NCBI GenBank assembly: GCA_002269645.1 | Contig: NIVC01000166.1 | Location: 124,001-188,000, forward strand | Direction of reading: 5' to 3' | Origin: Macrostomum lignano | Lineage: Eukaryota | Length of the DNA stretch: 64,000 bases | In this document: in pieces, positions 4,325 to 37,863 of the stretch | Layout of the letters: the number at the start of each line of letters is the position of its first letter | How positions within the stretch are numbered: the stretch's first letter is position 1 | Notes under the pieces: model-generated | The model's input: the letters and a program-made list of their open reading frames with translations, nothing else | Database searches by the model: none | Told to the model about the DNA's origin: nothing | Position numbers and translations under genes: made by a program

Positions 4325-7300
4325 TCAGGCTGCATTCTGCCGCATGCCCAAAGTCGGATACTTCAGCGGCCTTCGGATAGTCAGCTCGCAGCAGGGCACC
4401 TGTTGTCCATTGCTCCGATCGAGCACCCTGTTGATCACTCGGGGCACCACGGCGGTGAACTCTTCGCGATCCTGATTGAAATCATCAGCCACCACTGAGC
4501 ACAGCTGCTGCGTGAACAAGCCGCCACTTTCCGGGTGTCGGCCGCTCAATCGTCCAGGCGATGTGCTATAAAAGTACATGCAGTCTTCCAAAGACACCTG
4601 ATTGACCTGTTGAAACAGGCGGTGATTCGCTGGCGCGTCGCGGCAGGATTGAATAAAAAACAACTTTGGTTTGTCCTTCAGCTGCTGGCAGAGCTGGAAC
4701 TTTGAGTAGATAAGCTGGAGAGCCACTTGTCTTCCATCGTGAGAGTAGATAAAATCGTGACCGCCGTGGCTCATGAGGCACACAATGATGGCTTTGGAGT
4801 TTCTCAGCTCCTCTTCCGAGCAGATATTGGCAGGCAGGTGGTCGAAAAAGTGCGCGTTAACGTTTTGTACCTGCCTGCAGTCGAAGCCGAGGGAGGTAAA
4901 GCAGTGGTAAAGCGCGTTTTCGGCCATATCCGCCATGGAGCCCAGGCGTCGCGGCAGGTCCAGCCCAACGAAATCGTAGATGTTGATCACCAGAGCGATG
5001 CCCCGGTGGATGCCGTCCATGGGGTATGGCCCGGCTCTACTGGAGTCTTCCTGACCCCCAGTGGATTCGTTCGGTTCGCCGCCGCCCGTGGCGCCCTCTT
5101 CTTCTCGACCGCTTCCTCCGGGTCCGGAGCCCGAGGGGGGTGGCGGCTGGTCGCCGTTGCCTTGTTCGTCTTGTTCCATTGTGACGCCTTGACTCGACAG
5201 ATTGGCTAGGCGCCGAATTCTGCAGTGAGGCGGTAAGTGAATGTGCGCTTGGTTATCGTGTCAGAATCGGTGACTTCACAAGGGTTGCTCAGGAGCCCTG
5301 GTACCATTCCCTTTCTTTCAGAAACGTACGACCGTTACAATTTCTGCATCTCCTTTCCCAGCATGATTGTTTGTTTACGAAAAAATTGTGCACAGCTGGA
5401 GCATCTTGTGCGGGTTAGTTTTGGTTGAACACTAAGAAGTAACGTGCGATAATCGATGCGAAATACCTTGTTCGTATTACTCGTAACACCAAGTACTCGT
5501 ATTTAAAACAAGATTTTATAATTTTTTAAAGCGTCTTGGTGGTCGATGAGCGTTAAATGTTTGCGCTGAAACTTTAACCAATCAAACTTACAATTTCTCT
5601 AAAACCGTAGCGCACTCGTAGTGCTCGCAGAACTTCGCCCACTGCTGAGCGTTCATCTTCCGCTCGCCTTCCCTCTTCCAGAAGTCCAGCTCGTCTGGTT
5701 TGTTTAGCCGCTCTCCCAGCTCAAGGAGAACGCTTTTGTGACCGCATCGAGCGGCCCAGATCAGAGGGGTGTTGCCGGAAAAGTCTGCCAGCTTTAAATT
5801 GGCACCCAGTTTGCACAGTTCGCGAGCTGTCAACTCCAATCCCAGCTTTGCGGCGTACAGGATTGCCGAGTATCGCATCGCATCCTGCAGTGAATTTCGT
5901 ACCATCATTTTAAAGGGTTAGCTTGTGAAATCAGAGTCCGAAACTATCTTCTTTAAAATGGGCTCCCTGTGTATTTTTGGAGGTCTAAGGCTGTATCCAT
6001 CTTAGGGACGTTTTCGAAGTTGGAGCAGGTACGGGTATCTTGGTGCATTACTATTCAGTGTGATTGCATAGCACGATTGAACTACCTTTTGGTACTACAC
6101 TCTGTGTTGTCAATCTCAGTTATGTCAGCTTGATCGCGGCACAATGAAGATGAGGCCAATAAGTAAATTACTTCAAAGTTCGTCATCCGATCAAAGAGTC
6201 CTTCCAGCTCTTTCCATCTTGTCAGAAATCTCAAAAGATATGTTTGTTCGGACTGACTGACAAAAGCGTTCGATTAGAGTTTAGAGGATTAAAACCACCA
6301 TTTGTATCGATTTAAATACACGGGAACTGCTTTCGCCTTTCTGCCTCTGACGATAATATGAGTACATTAAACTCAATTGTGTTACAGTAAATCAATAATT
6401 TTCTCAGTAAAGAAACTCATACCTGACGATTAATATCTGCTCCCATATTGACGAGCGGCTCCAGAACGTCTGTGCGGTTATTTTTGGCCGCAAGAATCAG
6501 TGGCGTCTGACGTAGATTGTCCTCGGCATTGATTTCCGCCTTCAAAGCGATCTCGTTACTTTTAAAAGCCTCGCTAAACGCTGCCAGTACACTCTTGTGT
6601 CCCTTGACGGCAGCCCAGCACAGGGCAGTCCGGCCCTGCACATCTTTTGCACCGATTTCCAAGGATTTTTTTAGCATCTCGCTGACGATCTCGTCCTTGC
6701 CTTTGATGCACGCAATAATCAGCGGAGTTTGGCTCATTGGCCCGAAAGTTTGTTTGCACTTTTCCGGAGTGTCGCTTTGCTTCCGGAGCTGCTGGTCCGT
6801 CCACTGGTCCGGCGATGCCGGTCTGAAATTGGTTAATAGTTGTTAGCCTGTCTTAAGAATTCTGTAAGTTTTTTTAACTCACTTCCAGTCACCAAACACG
6901 AACTACATGCAGCATGCAATACGCAAACCATGCAAATCATGCAAACCATGATTGGAAGATGCATGAACATGCACTTACAGAGATTCCTCAGTGGAGCCGC
7001 CGTCTAGGAAAAACTTCTTAGTCAGGCTGGTCACGGCTGACGCACCGGAGCCGAATCGCTCAGTTCCCTTCTTCATCTCCGCCAGGCCCAAGCGTCTGTT
7101 CACCTCTGCCACCACGGTCTCAATGTGCTCCTTGCTGAACTTCTCATCGCGAATGACGGAGCAAACTGTATCCGAAAGTGACCCGGTGCTGCCGCCACTG
7201 CACAGAAGAAATTCGTGCTCAGGCAGACGGAACGAGGACTCCTCCAGTGAGCAGGCCTCAAGGCCCTCCGGCTGCTTCTCTGCTTGAATGAAGAAGATCT

Positions 7301-10168
7301 TCGGCTTGTCCTTCAGACCGGGGCACTGGCTGGCTCGAAATCGGGCCACGATGTCTCTGACTTCGATTTCTTCTCCGTCGCTGGCAAAGACGCTGCCACC
7401 AGTGCCGTGTCCGATGAGGAAGCACACGAAGCTGCTTATGTCAGCGAGATCCTGCGAAGTTACCACATTGTCAATGCATCTCCAAAAATCTGTACACCGA
7501 GGATTGTTGTATTTCTCAACAATAAAACTGAGTTTTTTGAAAGCATCCTCTATGTTTTGAGCCTCGTTTTCGAGATTTTTTGAGGGTGGAAACGTCGAAG
7601 TGTCGCCGCATTGTTCCACGGTAATAATGAGGCACAACCCCTTTTCTCGAGTCGCCATCTCAAAAGTGTCGCTAGTAGACGACCTGTTTGGGATTAGAAA
7701 AAGCAACCTGTTTGTATTGCAGGGTGATTTGCAGATAAATTAACTTTATTTGACACTCACGATGCGTCCGGCATTAGAGCAAGTTTTGCTCCGTCTTGTG
7801 GACTTTCTGTAGGTGTGCTTGGTTCGGATGGACCCGCAATGGCTGAAAGTTTAGGGTACCGAGTATTTAGGACATTAGTTCATAAGTTGCTCTAATTATG
7901 CTCGATAACTCTAATTTATCAATCAAGCCTGGGTTAGTATATAGTGGCTTACCCCGTCCGTGAAGAAGAAACGGGTGTTTAAGAAGTTCAGTAGCCGACT
8001 TCCTTTGATCTCTTTTCTGAGCGGTGCAGTTTCGGTAGAAGTCCTTTAAAGTGTTCGGGCAATTGTCGGGCAGGGGTGGTGCTCCCTGGTTTTTAACCCT
8101 GCGAACGATGGCTAGCATGTTCTTGCAGTCCCGGTGAGGCCGGTCTCCAGTCACCATCTGGTAAATCACGCAGCCGAACGCCCAGATGTCGGAGGTGCAG
8201 CTGTACGGAGTGTCTTCCGTTCCCTCCGTCAGAAACAGCTCGGGCGCCATGAACGCTGGGTCGCCCTTTGGATTTCCAGTCACGTGATCAGAGGCCGACT
8301 CGACGAGTTGAACTGCCAAACCGAAGTCGATTAGCTTAATATTTCGGTTATCTTCTAACACCATGATTGTGCGACAGTTCACGTCTCTGTGAATAATTAT
8401 CCCTGAAGTCATTGTGTGAAGGTAAGATAGGGCGCTACAGATCTGGAAGGTAAAATTAAAAACTTGAATCTGAGTTCAGTTCTTGAGTAGTTTTTTCTTA
8501 ATATTTATCTTACCTGTTTTGCAAGCTGTGATACAGTGCCGTAGTCTAGCGGCTTGCATCTGTTGATGAAGCTCTCCAGTGTTTGGCCATCAATCAGCTC
8601 CATCGAGACCAAAACGGACGGCTCGGCTGTCACTAGCGACATGTCCAGAAACCGGACAATATTTTCATGTTCCAACTTACAAAGACGCTTCTCATCATTG
8701 AAAATTTCTTTTAACTTTCCAAGCTGCTGGTCCTGCTGCTGGTCCTCGCCCAGCTGTACAGGCAGTCGGATGACCTTCGCCGCCCGACGCTTGGTGCCCT
8801 GCTTCTCCACAATTTCCAGCACATCGCTGTGCGCGCCTCGGGCTATGTGTCGCTTCTTTATCCAGCCAGGAAAAACCTCGGCTTCCTCCGGGCTGAAAAT
8901 CAATATAGAAATTATTGCACCATCTCGAAGATAGGGTCCAAGAGAATTCCCCGCAGACAAATTGCCCGCCGAGATTTGCCAGCAGTGCGATTTGCCCGCC
9001 GAGTTTTTCCTGCCGAGGTTTGCCCGCAATGCTTTTTTCCTGCAGCTCATTTACCCATTTGTCTGCATTGCATTCTCAATGCTTAGTACATGTAAATCTT
9101 AACAAAGAGATTTACGAGTACACGATCAAAACGTTTTGCATGATAGTAACTGCTTATCAAAAGGGGGGCCGTAGCCCAGCGGTAGCGCAGCTGCTCTGGT
9201 GTGCCAGCGACCCAGGCTCGATTCCAAGTGCAGTCACATTAATTTGGGGCTGAATTGGAATCTCGGCTTGGCTCTGCTCGTGCAATTAACGGCCTTGAGA
9301 GCCAACCCCCCAAGGCGCAGTGAAGTGCACATGCCTAACGATAATATAAAATTAGGGCCGCTGTACACTCCTGTGTGAGTGTGTGCCTGCGTAACGTATC
9401 CGCGCGCTTGTATGCCTGCTCAGGGGAGTCGGCGGAATGGGCAGTAATGCCTCTCGCCGGTTGTGTGCCCATGTCGCTTAAAGTGCGCCAAGGTGCACAC
9501 AACCCCCCTGCCTCTAATAAAAAAAACTGCTTATCAAATGATTTTGGGGGGGGGCAATGCAGACAGAATCTAGCTGCCAAATGCGCTGCAGTAAAAAAGC
9601 ACCGCGGGCAAACCCCGGCGGGAAAAAACTCGGCGGGCAACTCGCTCGCGGGTAATTCACTAGCGGGCAAATTGCACTGCGGGCAAATCTCGGCGGGCAA
9701 TTTGTCTGCGGGCATTTCTCGTGCTCCCGTGCGACGCTAAGCTACCCCAATCAGTCTTGTCGTATCTTTTATTTCAGAATCGTCCAAGAGAAATTGCACA
9801 CTGGCGCATAGAGTGGCGACTTTTCAATATGGCTGAGTATAAGTTAATTTAACTTTTAACATTTAAACTTGCTTGCTAAAGGCAGGGACGTAGCCAGGAT
9901 TTCCGATTAGGGAGGCACGTCTGCTAGAAATTGGAGGCCCCAAGCGCCGGATTACATTAGCCCTAATAGCTCCGCCGGTCAAAGATTGAATAAATAAATT
10001 TACAGTTCATTTAGAATTGATTTGAACAAAATAGCAATATTTGACCTGCGCAGCCAAGGATGACCAAAAAGACTTTGACAATTCTCCATTTAAAGTACGA
10101 GTTTGGAAACAATGCAACGAATTCACTAATCAACTCTGTATTAGTTAATACACTTACCAAGGCTGCAT
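4325..10168 (-). CDS. Kinase-like / inactive caspase-like / ankyrin x6 / caspase multidomain protein, paralog A (~1084 aa, 8 exons)
   Basis: Hand-derived GT-AG exons: 10168-10158, 8892-8514, 8442-7953, 7842-7761, 7683-6979, 6822-6423, 5884-5592, 5219-4325. The sum is 3255 nt, one open frame, intron phases 2,0,1,2,2,0,2. Motifs: HRDVNCRT/DFG/APE; GHG + QAEKQ; TPLxxA ankyrin repeats; SHG + QSCRD. Confidence 0.85.
8934..9728. mobile_element. Foldback/MITE-like element with ~150-bp inverted arms built of ATTTGCCCGC sub-repeats, in intron 1 of paralog A
   Basis: 8942-9050 is the inverted complement of ~9590-9720. No TSD was identified and the ends are approximate. Confidence 0.7.
9163..9240 (+). 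mobile_element. tRNA-derived SINE head or tRNA-like fragment
   Basis: GGGGCCGTAGCCCAGCGGTAG resembles an A-box and GGCTCGATTCC a B-box; no complete cloverleaf. Confidence 0.55.
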
Positions 10169-10891
10169 TTTGAGCAGAGTACAGGACTGGGGTCTCCTCA
10201 GGTAGAATTCTGTAGGCTTGGTCTTGACAACGAGAGCTTTGCAAGTAGATAGATTATGTAGACTGCGCTGTCTAGTTACTTGTAGACAGAGGGCCAAAAT
10301 GGCGGGTGGAGGGGAGGAGGGAGGGTGGCATGAAACACATTGGAGTAATGCACGGGGCGGGCGGCCAGTCCTCTCTACCCGCATTTACCCTGCGCAGCAC
10401 CAACCCCAGTGAGCGGCAGAAAGGCAGAAAACTGCATGCACAACTGTACAATACGGAAACAAGAGCTATGTGTATAGCCTTTATGGCGGATAGCTGAAAA
10501 AGCAAAAACTCTAAAGTACGTTTTTGTAATCGGGTCTGATATGGGTTCGGCTGAATTTGAAAAATGGAGACGAGATGAGCGACGCTACTAAAAGCGCTGC
10601 TGGTTTTGCAGCGATATTGTAGCCTCTACGCCAAAGCACGTGACAACTGCTTTAGGGTATGAGAGCTCTTTAGTGCTGGAATGTACGCCAAAGATATGGT
10701 ACCTTGTTCAGACTTCTTTCCCTAGATGCACACTGTGTCAGACAGTGGTTAGGATAAATGAATAAAAATGAATAATGTGACAACCTAAAAATTGGGTTGC
10801 AGAAAATTACGCCAGTTTTCCAGCGTTAAGATTTGCCTAGTAGCGAAATCATTGCTGTAGGGCGATTAAATTAAACGAGAACTCCCTGTCC

Positions 10892-13800
10892 ATGGCCGAA
10901 GGTTCTGAGCCAGGGTAAGAAATAAAACCAAATTTCACGCTTTTATCGAACTGTTTAAGCCATGTAAAAGTATTATTAATACTTTCAGATTTCAAATTGA
11001 CTTAAATATAACAAACTTGCTTTTGCTTGCGATTCATTTTGGGATGTTCTAGGAATCGCTTTTGCCGCCTCAAAAAGACTATATAGTCCTTGAGCTTGTC
11101 CCAAGTGAATGTTGCATAATCTTCAAGCCCTTGCCAGTATCGATACCGTTGAATTGATCAAATATTGCACCATTTCGTAGGCTCTACGACGAGAAATGGG
11201 ACAAGGTGAAGCTCCTCAGTCGAGGAGAGTTCGGCGAAGAGGTGCACGAGGTGCTCACCGACTTGAAGAATGTCTGCGCCGCTAAAATCATCCGCCTGCC
11301 AGTCACCGAATCGCATCAGGAGTCTAGAGACTCAAAGATCATCGATCGCGTAGTGAAAACAACTCAACAGCTTTGCCGTCTGCGTCACGACAATATCATC
11401 CGTTTCTACGAAATCAAGCACAAGCAGTCGGAGTCAACCGTTGAGGTTCTGATGGAGCTGATCACCGACAAGACACTCGGCGAGTTCATTGGTAGTAAAT
11501 GTCTGCCGGAAAAAGAAGCTAGGATTTTGTTAAAGCAGGTGAGTGATGATATTGAGCACATTGATCGTAGTATAATATCTCGAGATTACTTGCCTACTAC
11601 TGACGGGGGCGCAGGCGCCGCGATTAGGCAGCGAGTCCTCTATCGCAACCTCAAGGTAAAGGAGACCAATGTTTAACTTGAGGGTGCGCCCAGCCCCCGC
11701 CAGTAGTCGACAAGTTTGCAGAGGAGGCATCGGCATCGACGACCCTCATCTCCGGGCCGATATCCCGGACAAAGGCGCGAAGGTCACAGATGTTGTCTGT
11801 CTCCCTGAGAATGCAAATCTCCCTGAGGTCGGTTCTGTTTTTCGAGATCAGATATTCCGAGACTTTCCTGTTTAGATTATAAGCATAACAGAGCGGGTCT
11901 GCCTGTACTCGGCGCAACTGTTACAAAGGAGCTGGTGTTGCTGGTGGAGCAACTCCTGCTAGTATGACGGGTGATTTTCGACCTGGGCATGGGTGTAGCC
12001 TCACCAAAAGGTGGCTGCCGTCAGGGTTGCTGAATACCTTGGCGAGAGAATCCGCGAGCTTGTTACCCAGGATATTGCTGTGACCGGGTGTCCAGGTGAT
12101 TTATTATAGTTTTAAGGACTGAGAGAAATTGAGAACGACTAAAATGACTATTGTAGTCTATAAAAACTGATAAACTACGAGTACGAACTTCTTAACGAAT
12201 TAAAAAGAATATGAAGACTTCCAAGACTTCGAAGCCTTGTATCTTCTTATTTACCACAGCTAACTGCTATGCACTCTTCTAACCTAAAAAAACCTTGCAT
12301 CGTCGCGCTTTGTAGGTCTGCGACGCTCTCCGCTATTTGCATTCGGAGACGCCCGACAAGCCGTGCGTTATTCACAGGCAGATCAACCCCAGCACCATTG
12401 TGGTGTCGGCTGATGGGCTCAGGGCTAAGCTAACTGACTTCGGATTGGCCATCCTGCTGGTCAGCGCCAAGGCGCATCACCTCTCTGTGCTACGCGGCGA
12501 CACGCACTACATGGCTCCCGAGCTGTTTCTGACCAAAGAGACCGAGGAAACGCTTTACAGCTGCGCCTCGGACATCTGGGCGTTTGGCTGCCTGCTCTAC
12601 CGCATGACGGCTGGCAAGAGGCCGCACAGCGACTGCAAGAACATGCTCACTATTGGGCGTCGGATTCAAAATGAAGGCGCGCCGCCGCTCCCCAAAGAGT
12701 GCTCCAGGGTGATGCAGGACTTCTATGCCAAGTGCACAGCTCACGATAGAAAATACAGAGAGACTGCGGCGCAGTTGATGGAGCACGCGTTTATTGTAAA
12801 AGGTAAGCGTGTGAAAGCAAACGACTGTTGCTAATTTGCTCAGCAGCTCGGCGGTAAACGCGTTTAGCTGTCCCGTCAAAGACCTTTTGAGTGTGAGTCA
12901 TATAGCTATTTAATACGGACAAAATTTTCAATGAAAATTCGACAGACCAAAAAGAATATTTTTTGTGCAGAAAACCTTTAAAATTAGAAAAAAACTACAG
13001 AAAAATTTAAGAAAATCAAACATTATTCAAGTAGTACTACTTAGCAGTAGCTAGACATTCGCTTAGAATAAATGTTTACTTAGTAAATTTAAATTAACTT
13101 TAGCTGCCAATTTTTTCGTTTTTAGAGCTGTCTGAATTCAAACTTTTGACTGAGGACGAAGTCCGTGGCACGAAAGATGACTCGTGAGTACTCAAAGGTA
13201 TTTTTATAAAAAGATTATGTGATAAAAGAATTGATAAGTTTTAAGTTAGGGGCTTCTATAAGCAAACGTTCTCGTGTTTTCGAAGTTCTCTTTGCAATAT
13301 GGGTGTTACAAAATGCGTTACTTCAGTCAAACTGCAGTGCAGCACTTCAAAGCCAGGCCGATACGGGGTTGCTGTCTGGTGATTGCTATTCAGCAGTACG
13401 ACGAAGCTGTCCAGTTAAGTACGTGCCCAGGGGTGCAAGAAGACGCTGACAGGATTGAGCGCGTCTTTCAATCACTGAAATTTCAAGTGGAACGCCTTGA
13501 AGACACTAACAGTGTTGACATTTGGCGAGCCCTGCAAGCCCTCGGCAGCTTCAGTAAGTGGCAACAACTCGACAGTTTTGTGTGTTTCATCATTGGATGC
13601 GGATCGAATGACATCATCTACGCTAGTGATGGGGAGGAGATCGAAATCAAGGAGATTGTGACCAGCTTTCGGGCTAGCCGATGCCCAGCTCTGAGGGGCA
13701 AGCCAAAACTGTTCTTTGTGCAGACGCACCGGGATTGTGCGGAATCAGAAGCGTCTTCTCTGCAGCTTCGAGAGGCAGACTTCCTTGTGTGTCGCTCTGT

Positions 13801-16261
13801 CGTTAGACAGAGTGAGAGAACATTTGTGCAAGCCCTATGCGACGTCATCGAGGACACTCATAATCTGGCCGAGGATGTTGAAGCCCTGATCGATATGGCC
13901 AACTCGAAGGCCTTAGGAAAGCTCAATAAGATTTCGAGTCTCAATAAAAAACTGATGCTACATCCTGAGCCCGAAACATCTATGTAAGTTTATTGAGGTA
14001 TTTTTGCAGTCGAATAATTTTATCGCATTTCAAATCATTTTTCACGGCTCGTGAGCGGCTTCATGAAATAGTAGTTCTGCCAACGTTCTAAAAAGAATCT
14101 GTTCCTCTAGCATTCCTTTAGATAGGGAAGCGTTCGAAATTGCTGAAGTAAAATGCGCACATCATAATTTTGGAGAGAGACTATTGATGGACAGGAAGGT
14201 AACTCACAGGTTTTGTTTAACTAGAATTCACTAGCCTGATTTCAAAAATTTTAGGGACGCGTCTCCAAGCAAATGGTCCGATGAACAGCTTTCTGAGCTG
14301 TGCAACTCGTTAGGAAACCAGGAGAGAAGATTCGGGCCACTGAACCAGACTTTGCTCATGATTGCATCGGCTAAAGGCAAGGAAGAACTCGTGAGCCATC
14401 TTCTGAAGCAGGGACATCGACCAATTATCGATCTCGTCAGGGCCCAGGATGTTCAGATGCGGACTGCAATCGCCTGTGCTGCCATTCAAGGACACGAAAA
14501 TGTTCTCCTAGCTTTCACAAAGGCATTTGAGAACAATTCGGGCAATCTGGAAGCAGAAGTGAATAGACCCGACAGCCTGGGACAGACGCCTCTCATTCTA
14601 GCCGCCAGAAATCGTAGAAATTCAGCTCTGGAACAGCTTGTCCAGATGGGCTCCAAGTTGAACCATCAGGTAAGAACACAACCGGATGTTTTAAAATGGC
14701 TACCAAAGCTTACGCTCGTACACAAGCTTTACAAAAAATTACCAGCGCAAGTTTCTTTCATCCGCAGGACTCTATGGAGTACACAGCTGTTGCCTATGCA
14801 GCCATGGAGGGATTTGATGACACGGTTCGCATTCTGTGCAAACTGGGAGCCGATCCGAAGTTGCCAGACTTCCTAAAAAACACTCCTCTCATCTGGGCTG
14901 CTCGTGGTGGTCATAAAAATGTCATTGAAGCTCTACGCGGCCATTTGAGCTGCTCAACCGACGAGGATCACTGGCGAGCGAAGGGGGAGGAAGATATGGA
15001 TGCACTGGAGTGGGCTAAGCTGTGTGGGCACTACCAGTGTGGCAGCTTCATTCAGGAAGCGTAAGCATTCGCTTTTACTACAGTCTGGGTTTGCTTTTAC
15101 CAGGATTATTTCAGGTGATTGTGCGAACATCGTAATTTTGCTATTCTCGCAGAAGAAAAGTAAACTTTTATATGTTATTGAGCTATTTCACCAGTGTGTG
15201 GGAAGCTTTATCATATACATGTAAATACGAGTAGATACTTGAATTTTCAATGTAACAAGCTTTTGATTCAACAATTGAGAGTTTAAATAAACCAGCAGTG
15301 CGTTGAATTTGCTCAACATTCGTCTATTCGCAGAATCCGATCGCTTGCTTCACCAACGGGCCCAGCAACAACTCCATCCACCGAGAGCTCAGGTGACAAT
15401 GACTCCGGCGGTTCACCGCCAGGCGGTGCTGCGGGGGGTGGTTTGTCCAATCAGTCCACGACAAGACCCGGCGGATCCGCTGGCGATCCCCCTGAGGGGC
15501 CTAGGACAGGCAGGTCTACGACTCCACCGTATCCCATAAGCGGCACGCGAAGACGACTGGCCAAAATCATTAATATTGTCGACTTTGTGCACGGCTGTGG
15601 CATACAACGGCGAGACGGCTCAATGAACGAAATGACAGAGCACCATCTCTACAGGTGCTTCACTCGTCTTGGATTTGAAATCAAGCAGTATCTCAATGTT
15701 GGGAGTATTTTTTTCGAAAATCTTCTGACAGTAGACTACACTGAGGAGGACTACAATAATGCAGATGCGTTTCTACTGTGCATAATGTCTCACGGCGAGC
15801 AGGGTTACATCTTCGCTTACGACGGAGTTCGAATTCTTCTAGAGAACGTGTTTAGACAGTTTCGTCAGTGCCCAGGCTTGCGCAAAAAACCGAAGATTTT
15901 CATCGTACAGGCCTGCCGCGGTCTGGAATCGGACAGATTCACGGCCAGGCAGCCCGGCCAGTTCAACAATGGAGCGCACGAGGACTGCCTGTGCGTCTAC
16001 AGCACTTACAAACGGAACGTCAGCTTTCGCGACAGTAGGCGTGGCGGCTATTTTACCAGAGCACTGAAGGATGTCATACTGACAGATTTCGATCGGAACT
16101 CAGATGACCTGCGGTCTGCGTTCACAAAAGTAGTTGATAAGGTGGCTTCTGAGACCAATACTCAGCAGATTCCAGTGTACCAGTCAACTCTGAGACAGCC
16201 GCTTCGCTTGCCACCGAAAGGGGTGTCTACCACTGCAACACAGAGCTCAGACCGCTATTGA
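10892..16261 (+). CDS. Pseudokinase / inactive caspase-like / ankyrin x6 / caspase multidomain protein, paralog B (~1072 aa, 8 exons)
   Basis: Hand-derived exons: 10892-10914, 11181-11538, 12316-12802, 13126-13183, 13327-13983, 14255-14669, 14768-15060, 15334-16261. The sum is 3219 nt, open frame, same phases as paralog A. Motifs: HRQINPST/DFG/APE; GCG + QTHRD; ankyrins; SHG + QACRG. Confidence 0.85.
11680..12096 (-). mobile_element. Degenerate 3' fragment of an RNase H-bearing non-LTR retrotransposon in intron 2 of paralog B
   Basis: The minus strand translates WTPGHSNILGNKLADSLAK (RNase H C-terminal motif), followed by frameshifted sequence resembling the C-terminus of the 19.6-kb element. 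Confidence 0.7.
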
Positions 16262-18199: not shown

Positions 18200-18605
18200 A
18201 ACGACAGCGTCTCTATTAAGTGAAAACCTCTCCATTTAAACAACAGCGTCTCTAAGTGACAATGTCTCCACTCTTTATTTAAATGACAGCGTCTGTATTA
18301 AGTGGCAACGTCTCAATTTAAACGACAGCGTCTTTATTAAGTGACAACGTCTCCATTTAAACGACAGTGTCTGTATTAAGTGGCAACGTCTCCATTTAAA
18401 CGACAGCGTCTTTATTAAGTGACAACGTCTCCATTTAAACGACAGGGTCTTGATTAAGTGACAACGTCTCCATTTAAACGACAGGGTCTTGATTAAGTGA
18501 CAACGTCTCCATTTAAACGACAGGGTCTTGATTAAGTGACAACGTCTCCATTTAAACGACAGCGTCTGTATTAAGTGGCAAAATCTCCATTTAAACGACA
18601 ACGTC
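18200..18605. repeat. 39-bp minisatellite, ~9-10 copies
   Basis: Unit ATTAAGTGACAACGTCTCCATTTAAACGACAG(C/G)GTCTT(T/G); no unique spacers. Confidence 0.9.
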
Positions 18606-19556: not shown

Positions 19557-22532
19557 CTTGATTTACTTAACTTAGCTGCAGGGCGGTCCGAAGACGCAGC
19601 GGGGAGGCGAGCGTCGCCCATTCCGCTAATCCCTGAAAGACCCGCATAGGCTAGGGCGCGGGGCCGGTCAGGGAGGTCTGCCGGTCCTGTCTGCAGCGTT
19701 GTCTTCGGTGGGGAAGACGGAGGCTCGCTTGGTGGCCCGGAGGAACCGGATGAGCCGTGGGATGTTCTCGGGCCGGCAAACGTCGTCCAGGGACGGGTTG
19801 GGCTCGAGGTGGTTGAGCCGGTCTCGGTTGAAGGCCGGGCAGTAGCAGACGAAGTGCTTGGCGTCTTCGTTCTCGAGGTTGCAGAAAGGGCAGAGTTCGC
19901 TCCGGCGGGAACTTCGGAGGAAACAGTGCCTGGCAAAGCAACCGTGACCTGTGAAGGTCATAGTGAGAGCGCGGATATCTTTTCGATTTTGGTTCAAAAG
20001 GATTCTCCGCAGCTTGAGGGACGGATTGGGCACTGCCGCACGGGATTGGCGGCAGTTGGAGATACCATCCCATCTGCGCAAGTGCAGGATGTCCGCCCAG
20101 TCGTTAATCTGACGATTAATGACAGTGGCGGGGATGGGGGCCAGGGGCACGGGGCCAAGGGGCGAGCCGGAACAGCCTGCCTTAGCGAGGGAGTCGGCGA
20201 GCTCGTTACCTTTGAAGCCGGCGTGTCCTGGGATCCACGTAAGCCGGACGGTGTTCCTCCGAGCCAGCTTGTTGAGCTGCCCGATACAGTCGCGGACTGT
20301 TCGGGAGTTCGTAGTGGTGTGAGACAGGGCCTGCAAAGCGGCCTGACTGTCAGAGTGGAAGAGAATTCTTCTGTCCTTGAAGTCCCTGCAGTGGAGCTCA
20401 GCTGCGCAGGAGCTGATGGCAAGGACTTCGTTCTGGAAGACGCTGGAGAGTCTGCCAGTGTGTTGGGCGTGAGTAGCGATCACGCGGCCGTTGATAAGGA
20501 TACAGACTCCAAAGCCGGATAAACCGTCTTTGGAGGATCCGTCAGTAAAGCAGTGAACCTCCTGAGGGGCCCAGCTGTCGTTGGCGTTCTCCCTAGAGGG
20601 GATAGTGACCTTGAAGCGTTGGTAGAGATTGAGGGAGCGCGGCTCAGCGTCCGAAAGGACAGCCGCATTCCCACTCTCCTCCAGAACTTTAAGGCTCAGG
20701 TCAGAGTGCGGCAGGAGCTTGTGCCTCGCCATCGCTCTTTGTGGCTTGAAGCTAACGCCGGCCTCGATGAGCCGGCGGGTGGTTTTAGCAGCCTCGCGAC
20801 GGACAAAGATGTCCAGAGGCGGGAGGCAAAGAAAGGCGTTGAGGCCGTCAAAGGGAGCAGAGAGCGGGACATTCAGGATCATGCGGCACGCGCGTCCCTG
20901 CACCTTTTTGAGGGCTTCGTGGCAGGTTTTAATCTGCAAGGCGCTGGTCCAGACCAGGCCGGCGTAAGTGACGGCCGGTCGGACCATTGCGGTATAGATC
21001 CACCAGAGCCGCTTCGGGGTGAGGCCCCAGGTGGTGCCGACGGCTCTGCGCAGCTGCGCAAGAATCGCAAGGGCTTTTTTGGTTTTGGCCTGGACGTGGG
21101 TGGACCAGCTCAGCCGGTGGTCCAGCGTAACGCCGAGACACTTGGTTTGCTTGCAGGATGGGATTTCCACCCCGTAAAGCTTTAGTGGGCGAATACGCCA
21201 GTTAACCCTGCTGGTGAACATGATCGCGACAGTTTTGGTCTCAGAGAGCCTGAGGCCGCACCTGTCCGCCCATTGTTCAGCAGAGCGAATAAAGTTTTGC
21301 AGAAGGTCCCTAAGGGTTTCAGGTGACGGACCGGATGCCACGGCTGTGACATCATCGGCGTAACCGACCTTGAGGATGGGGTCAAGATGGCTGTCCTGGA
21401 GGAGCTCATCGATGACCATGTTCCAGAGGACTGGAGAGAGGACACCGCCCTGGGGGCTGCCTTTGCAGACGGTTACCGTCCGTTGGTGGCCCAGCAGGTG
21501 TGCGGTGGCAGTACGGTGGCTGATCATATACATGATCCACCGGGTGAGGTGCGAGTGGGTTCCTCTAGCACGTAGAGCTCTGTCGAAAGCCTCAAAGAGG
21601 ACATTATCGAAGGCTCCAACAATGTCGAGGAAGACAGCGAGAGCGTAGCCATAGCCAAGAACGGCTTTCTCCAGCACGTCGACCAAGACATGAAGCGCGC
21701 TCTCCGTGGACCTGCCTGCCCGAAAGGCGTGCTGGTTCTCACTGAGCGGCTTGTTCTTCAGTTCCACAGAGAGGAGGCGCCAGAGCACCAGTCTCTCTAA
21801 CAGCTTCACCAGTGAGGAGGTGAGGCTAATTGGTCTGAAGGATTTAATGGACCGGTAGTCCGGTCGGCCGGGCTTGGGGATAAAAACCACCTTGGCCTCG
21901 GTCCAGGGTTTCGGAACAAAGCCGAGAGCAATGCAAGCTTTCAGAAGCCGGCAAAGGTTCCGCAGGAAACCGGTTCATTTCACCGCCTCCCGCAGGAAGG
22001 CTGGCACAACGCCGTCCGGTCCTGGGGATTTGAAGGGTTTGAAGGAGGAGACTGCTTTAGTAACGCGGTCCTCCGTGATGATTGAGTCAGCCAGTACGTG
22101 ACCGCCCACTGAGTGGTCAGGGGGGTCGGTCCTGGCTGGCTCGTTCGGGAAAAACGCTGTTAGCATCGCTTCCAGTGTTTCTCCTGGGTTCTCAGTGAGC
22201 GAGCCGTCGGCTCTCTTGACTGAGGAGAGTTTGGACATTTTGTCCAGGGTGAGGGCTTTAACGATTCTGGAGGTGGGGCGGGAGCCCTCAAGTTCCTCAC
22301 AGTATTCGCGCCACTTGTTGGTTTTGGCGTTCCTAACCTGCCTCTTGAACTCGTGGATAGAGTTCAGGTAGGCGGTTTGGTCGGCCGGGTTTTTAGTTTT
22401 TTGGGCCCTGCGGTGAAGCCTTTTGGCTCTGCGACGGAGGTCGCCAAGCTGCGGGTTCCACCATGGGGCCGACTGTTTGCCTTTATATGCCTTTAGTGGG
22501 CATAAGGCTTCGAAGGCAGCAGTGAGCGAGTC
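19557..22532 (-). mobile_element. 5'-truncated non-LTR retrotransposon (I/Loa-like group: RT + RNase H + C-terminal Cys/His finger)
   Basis: 11-bp TSD CGGGCTTTGAA (19546-19556, 22533-22543). Motifs PQGGVLSP, YADD, FTDGS, WIPGH..GNE.AD and CPFC…H…C. Confidence 0.9.
19668..22532 (-). pseudogene. ORF2 (RT-RNase H) with a single in-frame TGA at 21977-21975 and no endonuclease domain
   Basis: ORFs 21975-22652 and 19668-21890 are in the same frame, separated by one stop. Sequence beyond 22532 is flank. Confidence 0.85.
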
Positions 22533-23789
22533 CGGGCTTTGAAACCTGAGTAGTAAAACTAGCTTGCAATTAAAAATACAAGGTTCATCACAAAGTTCTC
22601 TGTATTGGACTGTAACTCTCGACCAGTTAAAGGTATTGCATTGAAACTTCACACAAGACTGATTTCACATCATTTCAGCCTGTTCATAAAATTACATCAA
22701 CCGCATTGAGCACATTGCATAATTTTACAGTACAAGTTATGCACCGACTAACCGTTTTCCTTAACACCCATTATTCTGTTGAGCCTTTTAAACTTGGGGT
22801 CTTAACAGAGGTATCAGTCAATTTCGAGAATCAATTCAATATTTAACTTTAATCGCATGTTTTAATTACTCGTACAAGACAAAATAAGTTGAACCAGAAA
22901 AGTAAACTTGTTGTCTCGAGACCTGACCGCGACTACGAGCGTAACATAAAAATTAGCAGTTTGTTAAAATCAATGGTTTCAATATACGACAATTGATAAT
23001 AAATTTCTATTTTATTGGCCTTTCACGCTCAAGCCTCGCAATTCTAACTGTTAACTATCTGCATGCAAGCTGCCACAAGAAGTGCATCTTGAGCAGACCC
23101 CAATCGAATTAGTTGGAGCTCATACTTTGTCAAGTCTTGGTGCGTAGACGTTAATACAATATGCAAACAGACTTTCTAACTTGATCGCAAGTCCGAAGCC
23201 TAATGATTGGATTGTATACTTTGCCCAGTGTCCTGAGCTAGACTGTGAGTATTAACTACAGTACAAAGCAAATGCATTGTGTAAACAAGGCTGATTGGCA
23301 AGTGCTCATGTATTTCTCTGTATTTATGCGGCGTACGTAGAGACACAAAAAAGTTTGCAGTCTACACAGGCCCTGCAATCAACTTAAGTTTATAAAGTGT
23401 AGAATTTAAGACAGATGTATTGACAGTAGCCTTCACCAGCAACTGAAGCTACAATATTCTGAAGCTGAGGTAAGAACTCGCATACAGCGTTTATAGCTGC
23501 TTTCCCGTTTTCATATTTAGTACCGAGTTCATTTTAGTACGAGTATGCGGTAGCTTCACACGAAAATTTTCGACTGTCAGAGTGCAAAATTAAAAAAAAC
23601 AGGAGATTCTAAATCGAAAAACAAGGCAATCGAGCGCAAAACTCCTCAAATTTCACGTCATCACTTGACGGTGGCTGAAGAGGATATAGCTCGAATGTGG
23701 AATTAAAAATTAAGCCTGATTAAAAACCAACATAAAATACCTGCTATTTCCAGACAAATATGACATAACCTACCACATGAAATTTCAGA

Positions 23790-24629
23790 ACAATTCAACA
23801 GCGTCTGTTCCCTACTGGGAACTGGAAGGCTATTGAGGGTTCCACAAGCTGGTGTTCTCATGGCTGTTCCCACTGTTGATGCTGTTTGGAGCCTGGGGAA
23901 ATCTGTCCTGTCTGCTGGTACAGCTCCGAAAGCCTCATTGCTTCCCCTTCTCAGTGCGCTTATCTGCTGCGCCTTCGACAATATACTGGTGACCGTCAAG
24001 TCCGAAACACACTACTTGGCCCCAGTAGTCATGGGGAGAATCTTTCACCTGCATGATTTTCGAAGGAACCCAAACTACGCGGCGTGTGTCGCGTATTATA
24101 TTTTCACGTTTTGGCTAGTCCACGGCAGTCCGTTTATCCGACTAGGACTGTGCTTTCACTCGCTGGTGGTCACGCTGGCCGCAGTGTTGCTTCGGAAGCG
24201 TAACGTGACAATCTACCAGCTCAGCTTGCTGCTGCTGAGCTCAGTGCCCTGTATTCGAGTAGCCAGCTCTGAGTGGAATGTTAAGACTCAAAAATGTCGT
24301 TTTGTAAACGACTGGAATGAGGCAATCTACCGAATCTACACGGTGTTTTTAAGCGACTGTTGGTGTTCTGCTGCCTGATAGTTACAATGTTGGTCATTCT
24401 GGTCAGCTTGAGACGCAGTCGCAGGCAACTAACGGGACCAGGGACCAGCAGCGGATCACAAAACGGCCCTAAAACGCGGTCCGTGATCAGCATATTTATG
24501 TCGACCAGCCTGATATTTTTCTCGCGCGAGCTAACGCGCACTCGTGTTTGGCCATTATTTCACTCCGTTACCTACTATACAATCAACCATTGTCTACCTC
24601 TAAAACCGTATATACAACCTACCAAATAG
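23790..24629 (+). pseudogene. Class-A GPCR pseudogene (two frameshifts, C-terminus lost)
   Basis: LVFSWLFPLLMLFGAWGNLSC (TM1) lies in one frame, TM2-4 in ORF 23833-24378 and TM5-6 in ORF 24360-24629. All are homologous to the 26.5-kb gene. Confidence 0.8.
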
Positions 24630-26464: not shown

Positions 26465-27610
26465 ATGGTGAGTTAAAGCATCATGGTTTTTCTTTGAAGC
26501 TGAAACCACGAATAATCAATGGCCTTGACGTTTATCCACCTCTAGACCAACGAGACAATCAGCAACCTCATCCCGTCTGAAGGAGGCTTCGAGAAATTCA
26601 ATAGGTTGATCTTCTCCTGGCTATTCCCCCTCGTGATGGCATTCGGGACCTTCGGCAACGCCTCGTGCATGCTGGTGCTCCTGCGAAGACCAAAGTGCTT
26701 TCCTTTCTCTGTCCGGCTTAGCATGCTCAGCTGCTGCTTCGTGGACTTCCTGCTCGTCGCTGTGAAGTCCATCACGCACTATTTGTCCCCAGTCGTCATG
26801 GGAACAATCCTAAACGTTAGCGACTATAGAAGGACCTCGAGCTTAGCCGTGTGCATCTTATACTACTGGCTAACCATCTGGCTTCTGCATGGTAGCCCGT
26901 TTTTCCGTCTGGGCCTCTGCTTTCACTCGCTTGCCGTGACTCTGGTCCCACTCAAGCAGGCCACGTTGCTATGCAAAAGGAACGTGGCACTGTACCAGCT
27001 GCTACTGCTGCTGCTGAGTCTTATACCCTGCACCAGGATGTTCAGCACCTACTGGGTTGTTGAGTTACACAAATGCTTTTTCTATGAGGACTGGATCGAG
27101 GTTTTCTACAGGATATTCACGGTGTTTGTAGGCCGAATCGTAGTGGTAGTGTGTCTGTTGGTGACCCTGCTGGTCATCTTGCTGGGCGTAAGGCGCACGC
27201 GGGATCACCTGCGCGGATCGGTGATCTCTGTCGGTAGTTCTCGCGCTGCTGGGCCTCAAACCAAGGCGGTGACCAGCATCTTTGTGATGACTAGCGCCAT
27301 TTTCTTTTTGTGTGAAATGCCGTACAGCATACTGAGAGCCCTGCTGAATCTAGAGCTAATCAGGGGCACCAGCGATCTGAGCGAGGTGGTCCGTGTATTG
27401 AATGGTCTGATGTACGTAAACCCGGCTCTCAACTGGCTGCCTCTCTTGATCGGAGCGAAGTTTCGACACGAGTACATAAAAATGTACTGCTGCTTGTGCT
27501 GCCGGGTTCAAGAGAGCTCCAATAGATCTCGTTTCAACGAAATTTCAATGACAGCTCGTGCGAATCAACAACGAGCGAGCGCTAGTGCCTCATCAGTGCA
27601 GGCGGCTTGA
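26465..27610 (+). CDS. Class-A (rhodopsin-like, peptide/chemoreceptor-type) GPCR, ~355 aa, 2 exons
   Basis: Exon 1 is the ATG alone (26465-67, followed by GTGAGT). Exon 2 runs 26546-27610. Protein starts M-TNET (N-glycosylation sequon) and shows GN in TM1, CEMPY in TM6, VNP in TM7 and a Cys-rich tail. Confidence 0.85.
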
Positions 27611-29688: not shown

Positions 29689-32448
29689 CCTCTTCCACAC
29701 TGATGCATTTGGGTCTCACTCATGCAAGTGACGGATGGTACGCATAGCGTACCATAGAATATTTTGTGGGCGCAAAAATTTTGGCAGCACACCCTTAAGT
29801 GCCAGCTAGGCGGGAATTTTTCGCTTTGCCTATCTTTCTTTCTTTACGAGCGGCTTATTATTTTACGGCGTTTATAATCGTTTGATTTCGATCTTCTTTA
29901 ATTCACAGCTCCACCGATTGACCGCCTGGTTTGTGTGTTTCTTTATTACGGTTAAATATCTTTTTCCTGTGTTACTTTTTATACTATTTTGTGTTTGAAC
30001 ATTTTAGTACGCTTTTCATTTGTGTATATATCCTGTTTATAAAGTTATAGGCTTTATTTTGTATCGCTGTTACATTATAAGTTATTTTAATTAGAGCTTT
30101 TTGTATCGAATATGGCCATGCAGTTTATTCGTCAGGCTCTTGTGGGTCTTCGTGGTGGGCCAGCTGAGGTCTCGAGCGATTCTGACGACGGCTTTGAGGA
30201 CGAGATTTTAGAGGAGGAATCTATGGATGAAGATGTGACTGAAGAACAAGGCGATGATGCTGAAATGCAGTGGCGAGGCGTGACTGAGGAGACGGATACA
30301 TGAGAAAGCGCTGATGTGGAATTTTTCGGTGTTGAAGGCCTGAATCATGAAGTTCACGTTCCCGCCGACGTTGAGAATGGAGTCGGAAGTTTCTTTTCAA
30401 TGTTCGTTACTGACGATCTATTGGAAATGTTATGCAAGTTTACCAATGCTAGGGCATGGGCCGAGGTGCATTCATGCGAAGAAGATGGTCTTGATCAAAT
30501 GCCTGCAAGGTTGTCAGCTTGGCGCGATTGCACAATTTCCGAGATGAAAAAGATGCTAGCCATAATCATGTACATGGTTGTCGTCAAAAAGCCCGACATG
30601 CGTGCATATTGGTCCACTGATGAGTTTTACGGCAGCAGCCTGTTTCAAGGCGAGTTTTGCATCGCTCGAGAGCGCTTCCAACAAATCCTCTCCTTCTTAC
30701 GCTTCTACGATTGCCAGGACAACACGAACGCCGACGATCCACTAAGAAAGGTGCGCCCATTCCTGCAATATGTTTGCCAAATTTGCAAAAGAAACTACTC
30801 ACCAGGCAGGGAAGTTGCGATCGACGAGGAGCTGGTTCTTCATAAGGGCCGGCTCATTTTCAAGCAGTATATTCCTAAGAAGCGGGCTCGCTTTGGAATA
30901 AAAACCTACTGCCTCGTCGACGCCAAAACCGGCTATCTCTGGAACATACTGGTTCATTCAACACCGGATGAAAATGCTCGCTTTGGAGAGGGCCTGGGCT
31001 GCGCTGAACTCAGCATAACTGAAAGAATTGTTGTTGAGCTCATGCAAGATCTTTTCGGCTTAGGCTACCAAGTATTCACTGATAGTTTTTTCACGTCAAT
31101 TCGACTTGCCAGTTTTCTTCTCGAGAAAGGCACCACAATCACCGGTTCAGTCCAGGCAAATCGAGGCATCCCAGACTCGCTTAAGACTGCTAATATTCCA
31201 GCTCCCAGCTTTCGCTTCATGCGTAAAGGTGATGTCCTGGCAATAAAGATGACCGACAAGAAGGCAAGTGGCGTCAAGACTTTGCATCTCCTCGACACTC
31301 ACGGTGTTGCCGGCTCGGTCGAGCGACAGACCATCCGCCGCGGAGGGCTAGTGCAGCTGGTTAGGAAGCCTACGAGCGTTGCGAACTACACCAAATTCAT
31401 GGGAGGAGTCGATAGACTGGACTCGTGTCTCCAACCGTACCACCCTAACAGGAAGACATACCGATGGCATCAAAAGTTAGCGCTCCATCTGATGTTTCAA
31501 CTGGTGCACAATTCCTGGGTTGCCTACCAAATTTCAGGTGGATCCAAGCCTTTTCTGCGATTTTTGGAAACCTGCATCACTTGGCTAATGAGGAGCACGG
31601 GCCCTGGGAAGCTGCGGTGCATCCGGACGACGCCTGCTACACACGCTGGTGACGGACACTTTCCTTCGAAGCTCCCACCTACCCAGGGAAATCCACGTCC
31701 GTCTAAGCGCTTTCGCGTCTGCTACAGAAATGGAGTATCAAAGCGCACAGTGACCGTCTGCAAGGGTTGTGTGAATCAGCCGGGACTGTGAATTGGAGAC
31801 TGTTTCGAGCAGTGGCACGTTTAAGTGCAGTCCCTGGTTCGTGTGACTCCTCAGCCAGCGTTTAGAGCTTACACAAGTTTGCGCAACTTATCCTGTGCAA
31901 TGTACGAAACTTGAGTATGTATCGTTGTTTATTATTCTCGTTCTAATGTCAGATATGGATTAGATATTGTAAAAAGTTGTAAATTTTTACTAGCAATGAA
32001 CGACATCAGACAATTTAGTTATCTGAAAAAATTACAGGTGCTTGTGAGTTCCAGGTAGCTCGTATGGGGTCGAAACACAAGAAACAAATGCTTAAAAACT
32101 TCAAATATCAGTTTTTTCCTCGATACCTCCTTCAAAAAACCTTTCTCGTGTTTTATACTTTGCTGTTCCAGTGTTCCAGTTTTTATTGCAAGAAATTATT
32201 GAGAAATTGTTCGATAAATTAGTTTATTTCTATAGTACTTAACCATTAAAAGCTTTAATAAAAAAACTTTCGAAAGCCACGAAGTAATTGCATCTCTAAT
32301 CATGGCATGCATGGCGTACCATTCGTCACTTGTAAGTCTGTGTTCTTGCGTCTTAAGATTTCTGCAGGTTTAAAAAAGTTGTCTATGATAGTAAGCGGGC
32401 AAAGCTGTGAGCCATGGTATGCTATGCGTACCATCGGGTTCGATAGGG
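29689..32448 (+). mobile_element. piggyBac-family DNA transposon (decayed; termini approximate)
   Basis: TTAA at 29685-88 and 32449-52. Subterminal inverted repeats 29735-54 and 32415-34 match at 19/20. The extreme termini match poorly. Confidence 0.7.
30112..31824 (+). pseudogene. piggyBac transposase with two in-frame TGA stops (30301-03, 31789-91)
   Basis: DDD motifs AIDEEL, FTDSFF and GVDRLD. The frame continues through both stops to the C-terminal Cys-rich domain …CFEQWHV. Confidence 0.9.
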
Positions 32449-34128: not shown

Positions 34129-34453
34129 AGTAGTAATATACGTTACAAAATTGCCAGCAAACCGTTCTCATAATTCAATCAGTTTTACCCTTTATCAGTG
34201 TGAAATGACTCGTTTTCCCTTCATTATCGCTCGTCTTCACTTCGCTCAACTCGCTTCGCTCATCCTCGCTTCATTTCGGTCAATCTCCCTATTTCACACT
34301 TACAACGATTAATTCCCATTGAATTATGAGAATACGCTCTCGTCGTTCGCTTTGGTTTGCTGGCAATTTTGTAGCGCACCCAACACTTCTAACACTTCCA
34401 ATTCTCTATAACCCCTCGCACGCGCCGCAGGCGCGAACGGTCTTTTTCTGTTA
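34129..34453 (+). repeat. Left TIR (325 bp)
   Basis: Reverse complement of 59490-59814 with one mismatch seen. Confidence 0.95.
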
Positions 34454-34459
34454 TAAAAA

Positions 34460-34774: not shown

Positions 34775-34777
34775 AAA

Positions 34778-35002: not shown

Positions 35003-35012
35003 TTGTTCAAAC

Positions 35013-37130: not shown

Positions 37131-37157
37131 TTTATAAAAAATAAATTTAACAATTAA

Positions 37158-37829: not shown

Positions 37830-37863
37830 TTTTTAACATAAAAAACTTTTTTAACTTAAAAAA

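Follow-up and report, generated by a model that had tools for sequence, protein, structure and literature searches.

Gene A and its four-module product

We analysed a 64,000-nucleotide (nt) stretch of Macrostomum lignano DNA (assembly GCA_002269645.1, contig NIVC01000166.1, positions 124,001 to 188,000; hereafter the window), in which a minus-strand gene running from position 10168 to 4325 (gene A) combines a probable pseudokinase, a dead caspase domain, a block of ankyrin (ANK) repeats and a caspase with an intact predicted catalytic site. Its eight exons join into one open frame of 3255 nt, translating into 1084 amino acids (aa) followed by TGA, and all seven introns run from GT to AG (Table 1). 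The sequence-only reading of this DNA had spliced six open reading frames (ORFs) through GT-AG sites into a frame of about 1084 aa; that frame was reproduced exactly and all six large ORFs are used, but the exon total is eight once a first exon of 11 nt and a linker exon of 82 nt are counted. The same exon chain had been predicted independently before, because a 1084-aa UniProt model (A0A1I8FVW6, here P0285) is 98.9% identical to the product, with 12 substitutions; it is labelled only as a ‘Protein kinase domain-containing protein’. UniProt models P0285 and P0001 begin MQPC/MQLC, and the exon 1–exon 2 junction also occurs, in another frame, in GenBank PAA89053.1.

Pfam placed a Pkinase domain at residues 16–289 (E 1.3e-44), Peptidase_C14 in two stretches (E 3.3e-55, best 859–1071) and Ank_2 in three stretches (E 8.7e-23, best 664–745). 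Matches in the PDB set the ankyrin repeats, about five in number, at approximately residues 586–756, directly N-terminal to the linker that leads into the caspase at 859–1071. Gene A is a genuine single gene for this pseudokinase, dead-caspase, ANK and live-caspase chain, and this is far beyond chance given the Pfam E-values, the near-identical independent model and a paralogue with the same exon number and intron phases.

The C-terminal caspase scores 187.7 bits against PF00656 (cutoff 21.4), and its phmmer match in the PDB is caspase-7 (E 5e-21). In that alignment RRLG falls on VRNG, MSHGGH on SHG, IQSCRD on IQACRG and SGRHP on SWRSP, so that the His/Cys dyad and both S1 arginines stand in register. 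All three residues of the Asp-specific S1 pocket (Arg179, Gln283 and Arg341 in caspase-1 numbering) are represented, the Gln being that of QSCRD. The dyad and both arginine positions (R311 and R447 of the alignment) are invariant over five M. lignano ANK-caspase modules, and the exon 8 protein is 100% identical to three other database copies. The C-terminal domain is thus an intact predicted catalytic site with an Asp-specific S1 pocket.

The internal domain presents a different picture. Its best phmmer match in the PDB is the ancestral effector caspase-3/6/7 (E 2.2e-21), over the large-subunit part only. Glu replaces the catalytic Cys, Ser occupies the first S1 Arg position and the loop of the second Arg is shortened. 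The earlier residue assignments, namely a GHG His, QAEKQ and missing S1 arginines in domain 1, and His, Cys (QSCRD) and both arginines (RRLGS, GRHPESG) in domain 2, are borne out by the motifs and alignments, for domain 2 by the caspase-7 alignment. The internal Cys is lost in every paralogue (Glu in A; His, Ala or Glu in the others); the His survives in A and in a further paralogue, gene C, and is gone from the neighbouring gene B and from P0004. The pseudo-caspase is nevertheless kept in all three paralogues at 32–55% identity, with strongly conserved blocks SFVCFxIG, ASDGEEIE, KPKxFFxQ and SLTKKF; the beta6-like segment SLTKKF(F/Y)L holds four invariant residues. Linker motifs of xExD type (MEQD, GQED, SLED), checked as possible autoprocessing sites, are unconserved between A and B, except for an Asp before beta5 that sits where caspase-7 alignments place VEAD. 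The VEAD site of caspase-7 is uncleaved.

At the N-terminus the protein-kinase fold is present, as the sequence-only reading had it, but the plain label of kinase needs qualification: the Gly-loop is degenerate (ARGAHSDV) and the catalytic-loop Asn is replaced by Thr (HRDVNCRT), so that the full catalytic set of GxGxxG, Lys, alphaC Glu, HRD Asp, loop Asn and DFG is incomplete, with Lys43, the HRD Asp and DFG kept. M. lignano encodes a large family of related kinases, 43–49% identical, whose non-caspase members share the consensus GRGGFGEV, AAKTL, ESERNL, HRDINCSN, DFG and APE; this is canonical except for a family-wide Asn at HRD+2, with DFG and APE intact. Departures from it recur among the caspase-fused paralogues, in gene B (Gly-loop SRGEFGEE, catalytic loop HRQINPST, alphaC Glu lost) and in gene C (SRGDRGET, HRNINCKT, NFG replacing DFG). 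The N-terminal module of gene A is probably a catalytically impaired pseudokinase, in which nucleotide binding may survive because the beta3 Lys and DFG are kept. Its nearest PDB kinases, of WNK/STE/TKL type, are WNK1, SLK, BRAF and PAK3 (E 1e-29 to 1e-23), and in the same PDB sequence comparison it was not near RNase L or RIP kinases.

Intron 1 of gene A carries a foldback insertion resembling a miniature inverted-repeat transposable element. Its inverted-repeat arms lie about 0.5–0.7 kb apart, consist of GCCCGC-rich subrepeats and show complementarity of 89% over 66 nt and 88% over 49 nt. The homeologous copy (L003) lacks some 0.8 kb of the intron.

Paralogues, probable fusion origin and surrounding sequence

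Gene B lies head-to-head with gene A, encodes the same four modules in 1072 aa and is 39–41% identical to it. It corresponds to model P0002 (GenBank BOX15_Mlig030125g1), which a unique GT-AG solution reproduces exactly. Genes A and B both have eight exons, with identical intron phases (2,0,1,2,2,0,2), and the small fourth exon of gene B is the homologue of the linker exon 4 of gene A, in the same phase. The pseudo-caspase of B reads GCG/QTHR, and QACRG, the canonical form, stands in the terminal caspase; by its motifs (HRQ, no alphaC Glu) the B kinase is clearly predicted to be dead. The 723 bp between the divergent start codons presumably form a shared bidirectional promoter region.

Gene C has the same layout and lies about 15 kb from an A/B-type pair on the homeologous contig NIVC01000006.1 (L004, 6001–10176). 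It is annotated as an 846-aa partial gene and a separate 243-aa caspase gene, but in the genome sequence linker and caspase form one continuous frame in the last exon, and it is within a GGT-rich stretch of low complexity that the annotation breaks. In the terminal caspase of gene C, QANRG (codon AAC) takes the place of QACRG and the S1 loop is shortened. All three enzyme-like domains, the kinase and both caspases, are thus predicted to be dead, which makes gene C a candidate regulator.

When the active caspase domain was searched exhaustively with HMMER against representative sequences, just four proteins reached E<=1e-30, namely P0001, P0002, P0122 (an ANK-caspase of M. lignano) and P0121 (a tandem-caspase model from a mite). 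More fusions from M. lignano appeared at E 1e-22 and weaker, comprising the ANK-caspase P0130, two ANK-caspases with a weak Mab-21_C match (P0131, P0128) and the ANK-kinase-caspase P0241; neodermatan ANK-caspases were not recovered by this search. ANK-caspase and tandem-caspase models also occur in tick, jellyfish, mites, insects and Daphnia. A 577-aa tandem model from Gryllus corresponds to two separate genes in a sister species (287-aa and 299-aa models), and some tandem-caspase database models elsewhere may be mis-fused neighbours.

The two caspase domains of gene A have different closest relatives. Other pseudo-caspases aside, the top score of the internal domain is with the caspase of P0241, an ANK-kinase-caspase (92 bits), compared with 66 and 73 bits for the mite and jellyfish domains and 41–44 bits for the ANK-caspases of M. 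lignano. With the ANK-caspases P0122, P0131, P0128 and P0130 the active domain reaches 101–140 bits, but with the pseudo-caspase of its own chain only 53 bits. A tandem duplication within the gene, the route taken by caspase-16, was therefore rejected, since the mutual score of 53 bits falls below the 92 and 101–140 bits linking the domains to different M. lignano groups. Over 237 aa the ANK blocks of gene A and P0131 share 37% identity, and the ANK-linker-caspase module runs collinear throughout with the ANK-caspases P0122, P0131 and P0128. From these scores, a kinase-caspase module most likely fused with one of ANK-caspase type to give the architecture, the internal caspase having lost catalysis afterwards. 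Gene A is one of a lineage-specific set of M. lignano proteins in which variable heads precede an ANK-caspase module.

Three proteins encoded outside the window (P0131, P0128, P0013) combine an ANK-caspase (or ANK-kinase) module with borderline Mab-21_C heads, at 24.7 bits against a cutoff of 24.1 in P0128 and 21.9 bits in P0131. P0131 begins with a GS...DxD-like nucleotidyltransferase (NTase) motif, and proteins of this type may be cGAS/OAS-like-ANK-caspase fusions. The head of P0131 found no match among PDB sequences, so that the Mab-21 link stays weak.

Mobile elements were noted in the remainder of the window. A low-GC block (28–37% GC) looks like an integrated Maverick/Polinton-type element, encoding a DNA polymerase, an integrase and a packaging ATPase together with several unassigned ORFs. 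Next to it lies a long terminal repeat (gypsy-like) retrotransposon, in which two 133-aa ORFs, identical at 132 of 133 residues, flank minus-strand ORFs that match reverse-transcriptase RNase H-like and integrase domains; further ORFs look like protease and reverse transcriptase. Other transposon ORFs, the paralogous ORFs resembling G-protein-coupled receptors (GPCRs) and a tandem repeat are listed in Table 1.

Table 1. Features of gene A, gene B and the rest of the 64-kb window (window positions unless marked aa, which denotes residues of the gene A product)
Feature	Position	Strand	Description
Gene A exon 1	10158..10168	-	11 nt; ATG + 8 nt (M-Q-P, first 2 nt of codon 4); donor GTAAGT
Gene A exon 2	8514..8892	-	Kinase N-lobe
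Gene A exon 3	7953..8442	-	Kinase C-lobe
Gene A exon 4	7761..7842	-	82-nt Pro/Ser-rich linker, kinase to pseudo-caspase
Gene A exon 5	6979..7683	-	Pseudo-caspase domain, aa ~326-550
Gene A exon 6	6423..6822	-	Conserved SPxxW(S/T)DxQL lead-in and first ankyrin repeats
Gene A exon 7	5592..5884	-	Rest of ankyrin repeats; NTPLIWAAR motif invariant
Gene A exon 8	4325..5219	-	Gly/Ser/Pro/Glu-rich linker 5194-5045; complete caspase 5005-4367; TGA 4327-4325
Kinase Gly-loop IARGAHSDV	8846-8820	-	Exon 2; degenerate
Kinase beta3 Lys43 in AAKVI	8783-8769	-	Exon 2
Kinase catalytic loop HRDVNCRT	8391-8368	-	Exon 3; Asp kept, Asn to Thr
Kinase DFG	8328-8320	-	Exon 3
Kinase MAPE	8250-8239	-	Exon 3; APE motif aa 196-198
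Pseudo-caspase LIGHGTG	7418-7398, aa 410-416	-	Exon 5; GHG His kept
Pseudo-caspase FFIQAEKQ	7295-7272, aa 451-458	-	Exon 5; QAEKQ for QACRG, Cys to Glu
Pseudo-caspase SLTKKFFL	7028-7005	-	Exon 5; beta6-like, conserved
Active caspase PRRLGS	aa 876-881	-	Exon 8
Active caspase MSHGGH	aa 936-941	-	Exon 8
Active caspase IQSCRD	aa 976-981	-	Exon 8
Active caspase SGRHPESG	aa 1012-1019	-	Exon 8
Gene A intron 1 inverted-repeat arms	8934-9052, 9579-9728		
A/B spacer	10169..10891	.	723 bp between divergent start codons
Gene B	10892-16261	+	1072 aa
Gene B exons	10892-10914, 11181-11538, 12316-12802, 13126-13183, 13327-13983, 14255-14669, 14768-15060, 15334-16261	+	GT-AG solution
Tandem repeat downstream of gene B	~18200-18605		Self-matches shifted 39 nt and ~77 nt, 87-93% identity
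Non-LTR retrotransposon ORF	19668-22652	-	RVT_1 + RNase H, 740 aa; upstream 225-aa ORF; GC-rich patch
Fragment related to GPCR-like-looking ORFs	23833-24378	+	
Two paralogous intronless ~330-aa ORFs	26606-27610, 59815-60792	+	Multi-pass-membrane, GPCR-like look; no Pfam match
piggyBac-type transposase ORF	30316-31791	+	Intact-looking; DDE_Tnp_1_7, E 1.3e-71
Low-GC block	~34000-50500		Looks like Maverick/Polinton-type element
rve-type integrase	35013-36266	-	Low-GC block
A32-like packaging ATPase	39399-40154	+	Low-GC block
Protein-primed family-B DNA polymerase	46028-49180	-	Low-GC block
LTR (gypsy-like) retrotransposon	50914-59086		
Two 133-aa ORFs	50914-51315, 58685-59086		

Transcript-derived models, selection and proposed mechanism

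We favour the reading, at a probability of about 0.5, that gene A encodes a real four-module caspase that is initiator-like and carries a dead partner in cis. Because only the C-terminal caspase has an intact catalytic centre, the other ~850 residues would form a regulatory pro-domain. Induced proximity activates caspases that have long pro-domains, and cFLIP-L and similar pseudo-caspases use beta6/alpha5 to pair with a live caspase. By analogy, the protein would behave as an initiator-like caspase in which the pseudokinase and ANK modules bind a partner or ligand and supply the clustering input, while the pseudo-caspase would serve as an in-cis partner of the active domain, contacting it at the beta6/alpha5 dimer interface in the manner of cFLIP-L/caspase-8 and modelled caspase-X. 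Such pairing could set an activity threshold, with restraint at rest and activation on induced proximity. The conserved SLTKKF(F/Y)L segment fits the idea of an in-cis partner without proving it. We infer a role in cell death or immunity, the immune side being hinted at only by the sister fusions with weak Mab-21_C matches.

Several observations weigh against this interpretation. The two caspase folds are separated by ~300 residues of ANK and linker, unlike those of caspase-X, and both are by sequence most like effector caspases-3/7, which are activated by cleavage and not by proximity. An AlphaFold2 model of the near-identical P0001, built from a seven-sequence alignment, is compatible in secondary structure with the kinase, caspase and ANK folds but too poor for inter-domain contacts (predicted local distance difference test score 46.9, predicted template-modelling score 0.30). 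The terminal caspase of gene C is dead too, and therefore at least some family members are not proteases. A literature search by gene identifiers gave no match, and hence no expression or functional data. GenBank transcript-derived models of the gene A copies end early, at 559 (partial), 533 and 583 aa; truncated alleles or isoforms may exist, or the assembly or annotation may be in error, and for gene A itself the junctions joining exons 6, 7 and 8 are supported by prediction and homology.

These short models are the starting point for a reading in which the locus yields separate products, a kinase-pseudocaspase from exons 1–5 and an ANK-caspase from exons 6–8, whether as two genes, as an operon with a spliced-leader (SL) trans-spliced downstream cistron or through a short isoform ending in retained intron 5, so that no 1084-aa chain would be made. 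On this contig GenBank gives gene A the 559-aa partial kinase-plus-caspase product and calls nothing over exons 6–8; M. lignano uses SL trans-splicing, a retained intron 5 would lead to an immediate TAA, and many tandem-caspase database models elsewhere may be mis-fused neighbours, as in Gryllus. The short models, however, stop at small lesions and not at a natural gene end: those of 559 and 533 aa (PAA89053/PAA70070) stop after a 10-nt gap relative to this contig, in PAA89053.1 an implied artificial gap at 7061–7070 followed by the TGA at 7033–7031, and the 583-aa PAA94590.1, from the homeologous copy, is cut short where exon 6 in the homeolog assembly (L003) has lost 1 nt (GG to G). This deletion may well be an assembly error, because models of A′-type sequence from another assembly (P0001) lack it and are in frame. 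PAA94590.1 also crosses the exon 5–exon 6 junction, and intron 5, which separates the exon of the pseudo-caspase from that of the first ankyrin repeats, is just 156 nt long. The transcriptome-guided GenBank annotation (Mlig_3_7) gives full-length four-module models for gene B and its homeolog (1072 and 1073 aa), A and B agree in exon phase, and no conserved start codon is found at exon 6, where Met585 of A is Leu in B. Gene A was also compared with its homeolog A′ (L003; 98% DNA identity). The coding sequences differ by 20 synonymous and 22 non-synonymous changes, a ratio of non-synonymous to synonymous rates (dN/dS) of 0.32, with 0.53 in the kinase and 0.43 in the ANK region; the pseudo-caspase, with one synonymous and three non-synonymous changes, has no statistical power. 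The active caspase shows four synonymous changes and none that is non-synonymous, a pattern with a probability of ~0.0025 under neutrality (synonymous sites make up 22%), and the downstream exons are therefore maintained coding sequence under purifying selection. The two-gene solution was largely rejected on the traced truncations and the spanned junction, and separate products of any kind are very unlikely. The same figures make it scarcely credible that gene A is a decaying lineage-specific duplicate without maintained function: frameshifts do occur in some copies or transcripts, kinase motifs are degenerate and gene C has lost its last catalytic Cys, yet the gene A frame is open throughout, the caspase has changed only synonymously, the architecture is conserved among paralogues at about 40% identity and the one deletion seen in A′ is plausibly artefactual.

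Other alternatives accept the protein and dispute what its parts do. The pseudo-caspase could be a fusion relic, a spacer or a docking surface in a protein that works like other platyhelminth ANK-caspases, its N-terminal region recruiting it to a platform or substrate and its activation proceeding by trans-dimerisation or cleavage. M. lignano ANK-caspases without a pseudo-caspase (P0122) or with other heads (P0131, P0128) keep a collinear module and all catalytic residues, a long ANK block and a disordered linker of ~50 aa stand between the two folds, and the homeolog dN/dS of the pseudo-caspase is uninformative. Against this stand the retention of the domain in all three paralogues and the precedents of caspase-X and caspase-16; its conserved blocks, persisting despite an ancient loss of Cys, argue for a maintained function. 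This account is possible, though we regard it as doubtful. Alternatively, the ANK repeats and pseudokinase might bind a small molecule or pathogen ligand in the manner of RNase L and 2-5A, with oligomerisation switching the caspase on in a flatworm-specific innate immune response. Retention of the beta3 Lys and DFG while other catalytic residues decayed would suit such a sensor, as would the weak matches to Mab-21_C (a cGAS/OAS-like family) on the same ANK-caspase module and the expansion of the family, with a head-to-head pair here and a third member near such a pair on the homeologous contig. The domain order, however, differs from that of RNase L, the Mab-21 matches are borderline, with no PDB counterpart for the P0131 head, and the identifier search gave no expression or infection data, so that we consider this version unlikely. 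A bolder synthesis, also improbable as a whole, would have M. lignano evolve its own group of death switches, each self-contained, gated by a ligand or partner and built as a sensor head on an ANK-caspase module, the heads being pseudokinase plus pseudo-caspase (the A/B pair) or Mab-21/NTase-like; the pseudokinase and ANK repeats of A would sense like RNase L/2-5A, the pseudo-caspase would act as a cFLIP-like cis partner without adaptors, and all-dead paralogues such as C would be dominant regulators.

Significance and relation to known systems

If the in-cis partner model is correct, gene A would represent a compact natural caspase with its dead-caspase regulator and its sensing or recruitment modules in one polypeptide, an independently evolved case beside coral caspase-X and mammalian caspase-16, and would tie the ANK-caspases of parasitic flatworms to a free-living one. 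The family illustrates how modular shuffling of kinase-caspase and ANK-caspase units builds new death or immune proteins, and how stepwise loss of catalysis yields pseudoenzyme regulators, from the kinase to the internal caspase and, in gene C, the terminal caspase. RNA interference and transgenesis are available in M. lignano. The family may also provide platyhelminths, reported in a 2024 survey to have lost FADD (PMC11463336), with initiator-type architectures of an alternative kind. Until expression and activity have been demonstrated, the practical value stays modest.

Architecturally, gene A recalls proteins in which a kinase or pseudokinase and ankyrin repeats are tied to a death or immune effector. 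RNase L is ordered as ANK, pseudokinase and RNase, and DAPK1 as kinase, ANK, ROC-COR and death domain. In gene A the caspase is fused directly as the effector and the domain order differs, so that the resemblance is architectural only; a protein named DAPK1 from Merluccius polli appears among distant kinase-plus-ANK matches. The comparisons with cFLIP and RNase L drawn in the sequence-only reading may serve as reasonable analogies but do not denote family membership.

That reading knew of no caspase with this architecture, a claim that no longer holds: the protein is already in UniProt, and the 2024 survey of lophotrochozoan apoptosis genes (PMC11463336) reports ‘a M. lignano caspase with a kinase-like pro-domain’ that is sister to the ANK-caspase clade and not inside it. 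The same survey describes ANK-caspases as a clade confined to parasitic platyhelminths, from which DED-caspases (those with death-effector domains) have been lost in addition to FADD. Gene A shares with those proteins, as described there, ankyrin repeats N-terminal to a caspase in a flatworm. The main text on the Macrostomum protein, to the extent available, makes no mention of ankyrin repeats, a second (dead) caspase or kinase degeneracy; the gene meant may be gene A or another, and the ANK-kinase-caspase P0241 also exists. The four-module reading, the pseudokinase character, the fusion origin and the all-dead paralogue appear to be undescribed before.

Single chains joining a dead and a live caspase are already known. 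Coral caspase-X (Acropora, PMC4715348) has an N-terminal dead and a C-terminal active caspase, modelled as a cFLIP/caspase-8-like pair, and deletion of its dead domain raised killing in HeLa cells. Gene A shares this single-chain arrangement, but caspase-X has adjacent caspase domains and neither kinase nor ANK, whereas gene A has both modules; with its extra domains, its non-adjacent caspases and their descent from two M. lignano caspase lineages, gene A is not orthologous to caspase-X. Mammalian caspase-16 likewise places a caspase-fold pro-domain without catalytic site ahead of an active caspase (PMC12198278), but it arose by internal exon duplication, lacks kinase and ANK and is of independent origin. 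In the cFLIP-L/procaspase-8 complex (PDB 3H11, as cited in PMC4715348) a pseudo-caspase regulates a live caspase through the beta6 dimer interface, but as two separate, DED-recruited proteins, and the flatworm domains are closer to effector caspases-3/7 than to caspase-8. Lineage-specific domain shuffling of invertebrate caspases is common, and gene A relates to known kinds, namely caspases with unusual pro-domains and tandem pseudo/active caspases, without being categorically new.

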